This document shows, piece by piece, positions 5,956 to 32,099 of a stretch of 32,870 nt of DNA; within the stretch, counting starts at the first letter, position 1; each line of letters begins with the position of its first letter. A program made the translations under genes and the position numbers. The notes under the pieces are model-generated. The model had not been told where the DNA came from, ran no database searches, and was given only the letters and a program-made list of their open reading frames with translations. The stretch covers positions 1 to 32,870 of the forward strand of contig RQSC01000626.1 in assembly GCA_013416795.1 (NCBI GenBank), in the 5' to 3' direction. This DNA comes from Prasinococcaceae sp. CCMP 1430. Lineage: Eukaryota > Plantae > Prasinodermophyta.

Positions 5956-6329
5956 NNNNNNNNNNNNNNNNNNNNNNNNNNNNNNNNNNNNNNNNNNNNN
6001 NNNNNNNNNNNNNNNNNNNNNNNNNNNNNNNNNNNNNNNNNNNNNNNNNNNNNNNNNNNNNNNNNNNNNNNNNNNNNNNNNNNNNNNNNNNNNNNNNNNN
6101 NNNNNNNNNNNNNNNNNNNNNNNNNNNNNNNNNNNNNNNNNNNNNNNNNNNNNNNNNNNNNNNNNNNNNNNNNNNNNNNNNNNNNNNNNNNNNNNNNNNN
6201 NNNNNNNNNNNNNNNNNNNNNNNNNNNNNNNNNNNNNNNNNNNNNNNNNNNNNNNNNNNNNNNNNNNNNNNNNNNNNNNNNNNNNNNNNNNNNNNNNNNN
6301 NNNNNNNNNNNNNNNNNNNNNNNNNNNNN
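5956..6329. other. Assembly gap covering the divergent formin/SRAP promoter and the first SRAP exon
   Basis: Run of N flanked by CG-rich sequence. Confidence 0.97.
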
Positions 6330-10483: not shown

Positions 10484-10675
10484 CGCGCGCGGCCCGCAAA
10501 TTGATGAACTGGCCCGCTTCGCCGCCGGCGTCGGCGAGGTCGAGATCCGACGGTTTGATGTGCCGGCCGTCGGCCATGATCGCCGCGCGCTTAACCCGGT
10601 TTTCGAGCTCGCGCACATTGCCCGGCCAGCTCCACGCCTCGATCGCGGCGGCCGCCTCGGGCGAAAGGTCACGCA
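10484..10675 (-). other. Bacterial gene fragment: C-terminal part of a sigma-54-dependent activator AAA+ domain (NtrC family, PrsR-like)
   Basis: Translates as VRDLSPEAAAAIEAWSWPGNVRELENRVKRAAIMADGRHIKPSDLDL...INLRAARDAA; WPGNVREL.N is the sigma-54 activator signature; no Walker A or GAFTGA motif, so it is a fragment. Confidence 0.88.
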
Positions 10676-10701
10676 CCCCCCCCCCCCCCCCCCCCCCCCC
10701 C
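10676..10701. repeat. Poly-C tract (about 26 nt) at the distal edge of the bacterial fragment
   Basis: Direct reading. Confidence 0.9.
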
Positions 10702-22157: not shown

Positions 22158-22995
22158 TCAGCCGCGCTGCTGGCGGCCCTCGAGCAGCGCCCAGTGGCGT
22201 GCGAGGTCGTCGACAGCTGACCCGAGGATTCCCGCCGCGGCGAACGAGTCCAAGGTGCCATCGCGCACGTCGAGACGCTTACGGAGACGCGCCGATACTT
22301 CGCCCCTGGCGCGGCGCACGGCGTTCGTCGAGCCGTACTCGTCGACGAGCAGGAGGCCCACTGGAGGCTCGCCCGCAGCAGCGCCGTCGTCGAGCTCGGC
22401 CGACAGCGCCTGGATGAAGCGAAGCGTGCGCCGGGCCTGGTTTCCCACGGTGCTATCCCCAGCTTCGTCCCTCTCGAGCGGCACGCCTGCCACGACCGCG
22501 AGGCTCCGCCGCCCGCGCACGACGTCCGCTACGGCCGCCGCGTGCGCGGCGACCCTCGGCGCGCCGCTCGCGNNNNNNNNNNNNNNNNNNNNNNNNNNNN
22601 NNNNNNNNNNNNNNNNNNNNNNNNNNNNNNNNNNNNNNNNNNNNNNNNNNNNNNNNNNNNNNNNNNNNNNNNNNNNNNNNNNNNNNNNNNNNNNNNNNNN
22701 NNNNNNNNNNNNNNNNNNNNNNNNNNNNNNNNNNNNNNNNNNNNNNNNNNNNNNNNNNNNNNNNNNNNNNNNNNNNNNNNNNNNNNNNNNNNNNNNNNNN
22801 NNNNNNNNNNNNNNNNNNNNNNNNNNNNNNNNNNNNNNNNNNNNNNNNNNNNNNNNNNNNNNNNNNNNNNNNNNNNNNNNNNNNNNNNNNNNNNNNNNNN
22901 NNNNNNNNNNNNNNNNNNNNNNNNNNNNNNGCGCCGCCGCCGGCCGCGCGCAGAGCCGAGCGCGCCGGCGCTCCCTCGTCGCGCGCGCGGCGCAT
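22158..22995 (-). CDS. YqgF/RuvX-family RNase H-fold nuclease (pre-16S rRNA maturation/Holliday resolvase-like); middle lies in the gap
   Basis: VVAGVPL...G..G.QARRTLRF...L, LLVDEYGST, and LDSFAAAGIL match YqgF (VVGLP, DER.ST, D..AA..IL); the N-terminal acidic catalytic motif is hidden by the gap; candidate ATG near 22995. Confidence 0.75.
22573..22930. other. Assembly gap
   Basis: Run of N. Confidence 0.97.
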
Positions 22996-24786: not shown

Positions 24787-24939
24787 NNNNNNNNNNNNNN
24801 NNNNNNNNNNNNNNNNNNNNNNNNNNNNNNNNNNNNNNNNNNNNNNNNNNNNNNNNNNNNNNNNNNNNNNNNNNNNNNNNNNNNNNNNNNNNNNNNNNNN
24901 NNNNNNNNNNNNNNNNNNNNNNNNNNNNNNNNNNNNNNN
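24787..24939. other. Assembly gap at the divergent PPR/ABA4 promoter
   Basis: Run of N flanked by CG repeats. Confidence 0.97.
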
Positions 24940-29023: not shown

Positions 29024-29881
29024 ATGGGACGAAATGGGGGCGCTGCGCGAGTTCCTGCGTGTGTGGCTGCAGCGGGTGCGCTGCGCTGCGCTGGGCTGNC
29101 GCTCGACCGCCCGGCGGTGGTGCGCCCGGCAGCGGCGGGACGCGCCCGGCGGCACCGGGGCGGCGCATGCATGTGTGTGGCGGGCGCGGGCCCTGAGGTG
29201 GGCAGCGCGGACCTCAGCGTAGCGGCGGGGTCTACGGATGCGCCGCCGCCCGAGGGGTTCGCGACCGTCGAGGAGGCGCTCGCGGCGGTTGCGGCGGGCT
29301 CGTTCGCCGTGGTGGTCGACGACGAGAATCGGGAGAACGAGGGCGACCTGATCGGCGCGGCGGAGCGCATGACCCCCGAGGCGATGGCGTTCATGGTCCG
29401 CTACACTTCAGGCGTCATCTGCGTCGGCCTTCCCGGCGAGCGCTGCGACGCGCTGGAGCTGCCACTCATGGTGCCACCTGACGCGAACAGCGACGCGATG
29501 GCCACGGCCTTCACCGTGACGTGCGACCTCGCGGAGGGCACCACGACTGGCATCAGCGCGGCCGACCGCGCCGCCACGCTCCGTGCACTCGCAGACCCCG
29601 AGGTGTCGCCCGCCGCTTTCAACCGCCCCGGACACATATTCCCGCTGCGCGCGCGGCCCGGCGGCGTGCTGGTGCGGCCGGGCCACACAGAGGCCGCCGT
29701 CGACATGTCGCGCCTCGCCGGCTGCGCGCCCGCGGGCGTGCTGTGCGAGCTCGTGAACGACGACGGCACCATGCAGCGGCTCCCCGACCTCAAGCGCTTC
29801 GCCGCGGAGCATGACCTCCCCCTGGTCAGCATTGAGCAGCTCGCTGCGCACAGGGCTGCTTATGACGTCGAGTCCTTCTGA
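29024..29881 (+). CDS. ribB: Standalone 3,4-dihydroxy-2-butanone-4-phosphate synthase with transit-like extension; start uncertain (N at 29099)
   Basis: [69 protein letters not shown]; stop directly after the domain. Confidence 0.95.
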
Positions 29882-30245: not shown

Positions 30246-31722
30246 TCAGGCCTCGATGTCGGCGGTGGTCGCGGCAGCGAGGTCGAAGTAATGGCCCAAG
30301 CCGAAGCCGCTGAGGAAGTCGCGCACCTCCTGCGCCGTCTCCTTCTCCTCGACGTTGAAGTGCTTGAAAGTGTTCCCAGGCACCACGCCCTCCCACACCA
30401 GCTTGCACCAGTTGGGGCCGACCTTCTTCCTGGGCTTTTGTTCCCCCTCCTCCTGCTGCTGCTCGCCCTCATTGTCGTCGCTGTCCTCGTCCTCCCCCTC
30501 GGCCGCCCAGTCAATGCGGCGACTCATGAGCTTGCCGTAGCGACGCACGGCACGCGGCACACCTTCAACCACGACCATCGCCACGTCATCGTTCACCAAC
30601 GCGCAGCCAGTGAGCTGGTTCTGCCGCGCGTTGATGGACACTTTGTACCGATTCTTGCCGCCGTTCAGGTGGCACAGGCGGTAGACGCTGGCCATGACCT
30701 CCGTGCGCTCCTCCGGTCGGCCCAACAGCTTGCGCTCGGTCTTTGCGCGGCGCTCGGCCGGCGTGAGCTTCATCGCGAGGTTGTGATCGATGTGTGCCTG
30801 CTGGCGCTCCGCCATCTGGCGGCGCACCTCGGCCTCAACGGCCGTGGGGTCGTGGATCGCGCTGCTGTCCTGGGCGGTGCCCAGCACACGCATGAGGTTG
30901 GATATTTTCAGCTTGGGTTTTGGCGGCTCCATCAGCCCCGCCGCGATGAGCTCCTGCTTCTCCTTCTCGCGCGCCTGCCGTTGCTGCTTGCGCAGTTTTT
31001 TGCGCTCCTTCTCGGTGAGCTTGAGGGGCTGCGGGCCGGGCGCAGCGCGCTCGTGCTCTGGCTCGATGGGGATGGGGTGCTCGACGTACTGCGTGACAGA
31101 CTTGAGGAGGAGGGCCGCCGCCGCTCGTTTCGCATCGGAGTCGGCGGTGGGATCGGCTCTCCCGGCGCAGAGGGAGGCGCGCTCGGCCTTGGGCAGGCCC
31201 GCCAGGATGGTGACGTCCCACCACTCGACGTCGGGCACCCTCGCGGCTTCGCGCATGAGCTCCTCGTGCGGGGAAAGCCGCTGCTGTGTTTGCTGCTGCT
31301 GCTGCTGCTGGTCCTCCTGGTCGCCCTCGCCGCGGCCCTCGGGATCCTGGGGCGCGGCGCCACCGGCGTCTACGATCCTCCGACGCGAGCCCGCGGCGCC
31401 GCCGTACTGGGTGCGCCGGCGGTCATTCTCCGCCTTCTTCGCAAGAGTGCCCGCCTCCACAAAGACGAATTCGCGCCGCTTGCGCAAGCGCCCTGCCGAG
31501 GGCAGCGACGGGTCGAAGAAGTCGATCTCGGCGTTTTGGCCCTCTCTCTGGGCGGGAGGCGGCGGCCTTGCTTTGTCAGGAGCGGGGGCGGCCGCGCGCG
31601 CGCGCTTGGCGGCGGCCTCGCTGTCGCCGTCGCCGTCGCGCTTGCGCTTGGCGGGCGCGCCGTCGGCTGGCGCGGCGGCAGCGGCGCCTGCGGCCTTCTT
31701 AGCCTTGAGCGCGGCGAGCTTG
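30246..31722 (-). CDS. PRP3: U4/U6 snRNP protein Prp3; native start not visible
   Basis: PDVEWWD, ITxYVEHP-like VTQYVEHPIPIEP, LTEKERKKLRKQQR..REKEKQE.I..GLMEPPKPKLKISNLMRVLG, DPTAVEAEVRRQMAERQQAH, N.YKVSINARQNQLTG, W.G...F..F C-terminal domain. Confidence 0.95.
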
Positions 31723-31979
31723 CCCCGGTTTACCCGCATGATCTCTGCCCGTTCCTTGGGATAGCCGGCGCCACCTTCGCTTTCGAAGATCTTGCGATAG
31801 CAGTCTTGCAGGTTCAGTTCTGCCGCCCAGCCAAATCCCTTGGCATAGGGCATGGCAATCGCGTTGCCGTCATTGATCTGGCTGAACAGAAAGGCGTCGG
31901 TCGGATCGATGATCAGGCCGCAGAATACGCCCGGCATCGCGTTGCACGCCAGCATCGATCCCGTCCCGGTGCCGCACCC
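31723..31979 (-). other. Bacterial gene fragment: RpiB/LacA/LacB-family sugar-phosphate isomerase (DhuI-like subgroup), in frame with PRP3
   Basis: GCGTGTGSMLACNAMPGVFCGLIIDPTDAFLFSQINDGNAIAMPYAKGFGWAAELNL..YRKIF..EGG.GYPKERAE; CGTG catalytic motif and the N.GNA..P.AKGFGW.AELNL and GYP.ERA motifs of this subgroup. Confidence 0.88.
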
Positions 31980-32099
31980 AGGCCCGCGGCGCGCGCAACG
32001 GGGGGGGGAAGATCGTCACGCTCGGGCGTCGCCTTTCCTCCCCGCCCCTCGGGGCGAGCGCCGCCGCCGCTGCGCGCACCACCTGTGGTGCCGCCGGGG

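Follow-up and report, generated by a model that had tools for sequence, protein, structure and literature searches.

DhuI-like isomerases are described by the NCBIfam profile PRK09273 and by the structures 3c5y, 4u8e/4u8f (gbs1892), 2ppw and 3ono, of which we take 4u8e to be the DhuI enzyme of Streptococcus agalactiae. The green-plant PRP3/RDM16 proteins carry two domains, PRP3 and Prp3_C. Contaminant-derived assembly chimeras were, in the tardigrade case, reportedly mistaken for horizontal gene transfer. Insertions of the NUMT/NUPT type at repaired double-strand breaks are found in every read of the genome, and relatives or independent assemblies usually show them too.

We analysed a stretch of 32,870 nucleotides (hereafter the window) in which a chimeric open reading frame of 569 residues (30246-31955, minus strand, from the list of open reading frames) shares both domains with the PRP3/RDM16 proteins. 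Compared with native PRP3, its start codon and first 19 codons are replaced by foreign sequence, and compared with complete DhuI-like enzymes this foreign piece, about 85% identical to 3c5y by alignment count, comprises the middle 40% only. As in contaminant chimeras, a short undecayed bacterial sequence lies at a hard-to-sequence spot of eukaryotic DNA and is absent from independent data of the same species. Unlike them, this scrap is very short, at about 260-280 nt, and an overlap of 22 nt within a coding region connects it to an essential gene, so that the two misleadingly read as one open, in-frame fusion. The window also shares with NUMT/NUPT-type capture a short foreign fragment and junction microhomology, but the piece is absent from the annotated gene model and from wild scaffolds. 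Our results suggest that the join is, with high probability, a gap-fill or misjoin chimera derived from a contaminant and not a gene fusion. A chimeric PRP3 is unsupported as biology, and the isomerase-PRP3 fusion is almost certainly not a real feature.

A bacterial isomerase fragment in the PRP3 reading frame

The original prediction held that the first 85 or so codons of this frame are not Prp3, that they come from an RpiB/LacAB-family isomerase of the DhuI subgroup truncated at both ends, that they pass into PRP3 in frame and without a stop through a microhomology at an LAALKA-like segment, and that PRP3 now depends on them for its ATG. Each of these points was borne out. Residues 1 to about 78-85 of the frame match the isomerase, not PRP3. 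The DhuI-like gene fragment occupies 31724-31984 on the minus strand, as placed by NCBIfam, PDB and locus alignments; the minus strand of 31722-32015 matches PRK09273 with 146.5 bits (E = 6.6e-43), above the curated cutoff of 137, and the generic Pfam profile LacAB_rpiB is borderline (24.2 bits for a cutoff of 24.7). Among structures, the piece aligns with residues 89-175 of the 231 of 3c5y (E = 2.3e-47) and with 4u8e (E = 2.5e-33), with further matches to 2ppw and 3ono. It covers positions of about 70-154 of the 211 in the PRK09273 profile. Positions 1-69 and 155-211 are missing, with filler and a stop on the 5' side and PRP3 on the 3' side, and because both ends of the enzyme are lost the piece cannot form a complete fold.

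A search for bacterial homologues, with one genome per species, gave more than 500 relatives of the piece. The best 80 of them have 87-95% protein identity to it and 82-87% DNA identity in gapless alignments, which extend from 31981 to an end between 31747 and 31702 that varies with the locus. Named loci among these 80 belong mostly to the Sphingomonadales (Erythrobacteraceae, Novosphingobium, Sphingopyxis) or to Brevundimonas, the rest being uncultured alphaproteobacteria with a small number of gammaproteobacterial MAGs. L001, the closest homologue at the protein level, is identical at 82 of 87 residues (94%) and differs at 42 of 261 bases (84% DNA identity), with 4, 2 and 36 of the differences at the first, second and third codon positions. 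The 87 codons of the piece are free of stops and frameshifts. The 87 residues include the protein motif GCGTG. The G+C content of the piece is 61%, with a GC3 of 0.76, and local values are 0.57-0.59 within it and 0.65-0.82 around it, the PRP3 part of the window having 69% G+C and a GC3 of 0.87. We thus found in the piece no sign of residence, neither drift to host composition (GC3 of 0.76 for a host value of 0.87) nor neutral decay, its frame being intact. To judge from its sequence, it was cut from a working gene of an alphaproteobacterium and has not decayed, and it bears no trace of a stay in a nuclear genome of 70% G+C. No bacterial gene context (own start, stop or neighbours) accompanies it, since algal PRP3 borders it on one side and unassignable filler on the other. 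No identical bacterial genome or metagenome contig was found for it, the best match having 84-87% nucleotide identity, and an exact 32-mer of it had no match in the JGI metagenome contigs.

The remainder of the frame is a genuine PRP3 (U4/U6 snRNP protein) gene. We required for membership in PRP3 that both PF08572 and PF06544 score above their gathering thresholds, and the 569-residue frame reaches both: PRP3 at residues 146-398 (198.6 bits, E = 1.3e-58) and Prp3_C at residues 423-560 (123.6 bits, E = 7.6e-36). Among full-length proteins, those nearest to it are the PRP3/RDM16 proteins of plants and algae, with 40-47% identity. The native coding sequence runs on the minus strand from codon 20 (K-L-A-A-L-K-A...) to the stop, at 30246-31723. 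The translation shows that every ATG on the 5' side of the PRP3 domain belongs to the bacterial piece: the first one lies inside it (31953-31955, minus strand), methionines 1, 7, 35 and 72 are all within it, the next is residue 234, and an in-frame TGA stands 5' of the frame at 32018-32016. A scrap of a bacterial isomerase therefore sits in frame, with no intervening stop, on a real PRP3 gene.

The inner junction can be placed precisely. Bacterial homology may begin at 31984, continues down to 31702 and is gone after the AAGGC there, and native identity restarts at 31723 (at 31725 when one mismatch is counted), so the switch from one source to the other lies within a stretch of 22 bases. This overlap, CAAGCTCGCCGCGCTCAAGGCT (31702-31723, minus strand), fits both native PRP3 and the bacterial gene, with the crossover inside it. 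It is identical to the native sequence from Tara at 22 of 22 positions, and on the alignments with the nearest homologues we counted 18 of 22 for one bacterial locus (L073) and 13 of 22 for L001. The bacterial homologues encode KLADLKA or KLKDLKA at this point, following the pattern K/I/V-L-x-D-L-K-A after ...NRG. Since native PRP3 and the bacterial gene are alike in being G+C-rich coding sequence and in their three-base periodicity, an overlap of such length all but compels a join in the same frame. The in-frame fusion is thus a by-product of the overlap and needs no selective explanation.

The outer border is less tidy. A filler of 49 nt (31985-32033, minus strand) follows, with a C9 run (G9 on the plus strand, 32000-32008) and the in-frame TGA mentioned above. 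Comparison of the filler with the rest of the window gave only low-complexity matches of 12 nt, and comparison with the bacterial loci only low-complexity matches of 12-16 nt (E = 0.85). Beyond it, 32034-32076 (minus strand) is probably a remnant of the native PRP3 5' leader, diverged or error-laden, as a weak local alignment suggests: it reads ...CGAGGGGCGGGGAGGAAAGG, where the native leader in five Tara scaffolds reads ...CGAGGGCGGGGCGGGGTGGGAAGG-ATG, and the alignment score is 40, shuffled sequences scoring 23.9 +/- 4.2 with a maximum of 45. If this remnant is real, its position just upstream of the filler implies that the native start was replaced in place, and that no such start lies further upstream. 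We also considered a second microhomology at this border, a 10-nt match CGCCGCGGGC between 31991-31982 and native codons 2-5, and discarded it because such matches are too common here.

The native start of PRP3

Native gene models came from the 90%-identity cluster of the C-terminal half of PRP3. One member, PRCOL_00003477-RA of Prasinoderma coloniale (P0121, from EukProt), has 510 residues and is identical to the window across its last 491; it starts with MPPRADRAALAAKQAALKA-KLAALKA. A second protein of 510 residues, from a Tara Oceans scaffold, is 96% identical to the window over the remaining residues, and both begin with MPPRADRAALAAKQAALKA followed by KLAALKAKKAAG....

The neighbouring RibB gene gave access to further contigs, ten Tara scaffolds from ten samples. 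Five of them, each from a separate sample, reach the PRP3 start and read ...GGGAAGG ATG CCG CCG CGG GCG GAC ... AAG GCC, then AAG CTC GCC, uninterrupted; none of the five has isomerase sequence at the PRP3 start, nor an intron there. One of these scaffolds (L082) matches the window with 98.7% nucleotide identity (its positions 123-2747 for 31725-29100 of the window), and nothing in the window corresponds to its first 122 bases, which hold the leader and codons 1-18. The stretch lost from the window (the leader, codons 1-18 MPPRADRAALAAKQAALK and some of codon 19) has 85% G+C and includes 57 native PRP3 coding bases. All ten scaffolds stop inside PRP3 or just 5' of it, and the five with the PRP3 start break off 34-69 nt before the ATG, which shows that this stretch is hard for short reads.

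One of the Tara scaffolds (L091, positions 1-2911) departs from the other four in the leader upstream of -26, where it reads TCGAAGTCCTCGAACAGCGC... in place of GCGGCGGCGCGCGC..., either as a population variant or as a chimeric contig end.

Haploidy has been reported for the alga (PMC11884799) and PRP3 appears to be single-copy, so that the chimeric and the native versions cannot both be correct. The original prediction had named two findings that together would tell against a real chimeric essential gene, a different native N-terminus of PRP3 and an absence of genomic reads across the junctions. On the first of these, the annotated model and the five wild scaffolds carry just such an N-terminus and contradict that reading; the evidence instead favours the alternative it had kept in reserve, a gap-filling chimera that would mislead annotation.

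The chimera itself was seen nowhere else. The chimeric junction is absent from the annotated model and the five Tara scaffolds, and no record contains the exact product of 569 residues. A full HMMER search with residues 1-140 of the frame, among 1.84 billion representatives, gave 222 hits, all to the isomerase part and none spanning the junction. One protein (P0162) that aligned to query residues 35-135 was considered as a chimera and set aside, being a bacterial fragment with a low-complexity tail. Exact look-up of the 569-residue chimera, the 510-residue model and the frame of a DCN1-like gene elsewhere in the window returned no contigs. A word-index protein search with residues 79-233 gave no N-terminal fragments, the full-length relatives lying outside the length range searched, and for the native PRP3 N-terminal peptide none of 600 pattern matches in the JGI metagenome contigs was confirmed. 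The contigs of the 336-residue members of the cluster (three from Logan, one from ENA) all begin 54 nt upstream of Met234, presumably at a CAG repeat, and for this reason are uninformative on the 5' end of PRP3.

Other defects of the scaffold

The same scaffold is damaged at other places of extreme composition. It has N runs at 5956-6329 (374 bases), 22573-22930 (358) and 24787-24939 (153), and a single N at 29099. The 60-mers flanking these four have 75-92% G+C, seven of the eight being at 83% or more, and each of the three long runs, which are either assembly gaps or masked segments, is flanked by 83-92% G+C.

The single N at 29099 marks the loss of the native 5' end of RibB (DHBP synthase), as revealed by the Tara scaffold L082 and by a transcript. 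At this point L082 has 352 more bases, with 85% G+C, so that both native stretches present in L082 and missing from the window share this composition. A complete RibB transcript from MMETSP, annotated as P. coloniale (P0281, UniRef A0A7R9TWW5), starts with MATATAVTRAAARARPRS-LDRPAVV; the MATATAVTRAAARARPRS start is absent from the window, where unrelated sequence precedes LDRPAVV. Given the 352 additional bases of L082, the start of the RibB/DHBP synthase frame in the window (29024-29881, plus strand, 285 residues) is spurious. At RibB, this scaffold shows an assembly defect of the kind proposed for PRP3.

The EukProt RibB protein P0282 (165 residues) is 100% identical to the window (29102-29878) and begins at an internal methionine, 112 residues into the transcript-supported RibB. 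It may be a truncated gene model.

A second bacterial scrap is found at 10485-10676 (minus strand), where Pfam and PDB searches recognise the AAA+ lid domain of a sigma-54-dependent activator of the NtrC family (AAA_lid_14, E = 1.3e-14; ZraR 1ojl, E = 2.3e-07). The ATG (10483) of the DCN1-like gene follows it immediately, and a C26 run (10676-10701) adjoins it. This scrap, together with the loss of the RibB start, indicates that the assembly should be screened systematically before any odd fusion or bacterial fragment in it is interpreted.

Origin of the join

Several lines of evidence converge on a chimera made by gap filling or misjoining. Over 491 residues the annotated model agrees fully with the window, yet it has the native start; the five Tara scaffolds carry the native start and leader without the piece; the N runs and missing stretches coincide with extreme G+C, and the RibB start is lost as well; the piece resembles a contemporary working bacterial gene; its junction is unseen among the 1.84 billion representatives; and the window holds a second scrap. 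Other defects thus occur at comparable sequence in the scaffold, and the foreign piece stands in place of a native stretch that is hard to sequence. We infer that the source of the piece was a contaminating bacterium. The native 5' end of PRP3, with its 85% G+C, would have been left unassembled, and the hole would have been bridged by contaminating alphaproteobacterial (Sphingomonadales-like) sequence via the 22-base overlap, since the DhuI-like isomerase gene would by chance share about 22 bases (AAG CTC GCC GxG CTC AAG GC) with PRP3 codons 20-26. The join itself may have been made by an overlap, gap-closing or similar software step working from contaminant reads.

Some observations count against such a chimera. 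Cells, too, use microhomology when they join foreign DNA at breaks. The search for an identical bacterial contig gave none, and such a chimera does not by itself account for the filler or for the homopolymers next to both bacterial pieces. The published P. coloniale assembly, whose paper cites the CNGB project CNP0000924, is described as 22 chromosomes obtained with PacBio and polished with Arrow and NextPolish using Illumina reads, from an axenic culture and with a screen for bacteria (PMC7455551), a description that fits neither N gaps nor contaminant reads.

A real insertion would require that, in the sequenced culture line, a break in the G+C-rich 5' end of PRP3 was repaired by microhomology-mediated capture of bacterial DNA, which would delete the native start and give PRP3 a foreign N-terminal extension of 78-85 residues with a bacterial ATG. 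The 22-nt microhomology at the inner junction and the open, in-frame reading would fit such an event, and the native first 19 residues, a low-complexity run of alanine and lysine, might be dispensable. We nevertheless consider it very unlikely. The model of the published genome, whose protein is identical over 491 residues, has the native start, and so do five wild scaffolds; the alga is reported as haploid; plain assembly defects occur at equally G+C-rich spots of the scaffold; the piece shows no decay and no drift to host composition; and its junction is in no other data set. The overlap is also longer than is typical of microhomology-mediated end joining, which uses few bases. It is similarly improbable that the piece is one of several short stretches of bacterial DNA that were captured through microhomology where breaks arose in G+C-rich, promoter-proximal sequence. 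Were the insertion real, an essential spliceosome gene would start from a bacterial ATG with a foreign leader of 80 residues, and the cell would tolerate it.

The chimera might also have arisen after assembly, if misplaced contaminant short reads had overwritten a low-depth, high-G+C region of a long-read assembly during polishing or editing. This is a variant of the assembly chimera with the same biological conclusion, and we give it a very slim chance. A polisher would not usually write in some 310 new bases, and N runs of 153-374 bases and at least 203 pieces are at odds with a long-read assembly in 22 chromosomes. On the other side, the published pipeline did apply NextPolish with Illumina reads to a PacBio draft (PMC7455551), the annotated model could predate polishing, and the defects coincide with extreme G+C.

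Finally, it is highly improbable that the piece is part of an intron or larger insertion, with a first exon MPPRADRAALAAKQAALKA beyond 32870 spliced to an AG in the overlap (CTCAAG, then GCT): the annotated 510-residue model could come from the same sequence, upstream of the piece the window has another 890 nt or so and the scaffold continues past it, and an AG is available at 31706-31705, but the first 19 codons are contiguous and intronless in five wild scaffolds, the probable leader remnant directly upstream of the filler has the position expected of a replacement in place, and an intron of this kind, longer than 1.1 kb, would have to include AT-rich, promoter-like DNA.

The chimera derived from a contaminant thus remains our preferred reading, and it has practical consequences. 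Gene callers run on the window sequence would return either an isomerase-PRP3 fusion of 569 residues or a truncated PRP3, and screens for horizontal gene transfer would score this early-diverging green alga as having a bacterial gene. Studies of deep plant phylogeny, and inferences of gene gain and loss, draw on the P. coloniale genome.

A last observation concerns homopolymers of nine bases or more, of which the window has four. Two of them (C26 at 10676-10701 and G9 at 32000-32008) lie within 16 bases of the outer borders of the bacterial scraps, and homopolymers in this position may be a mark of the joining process.
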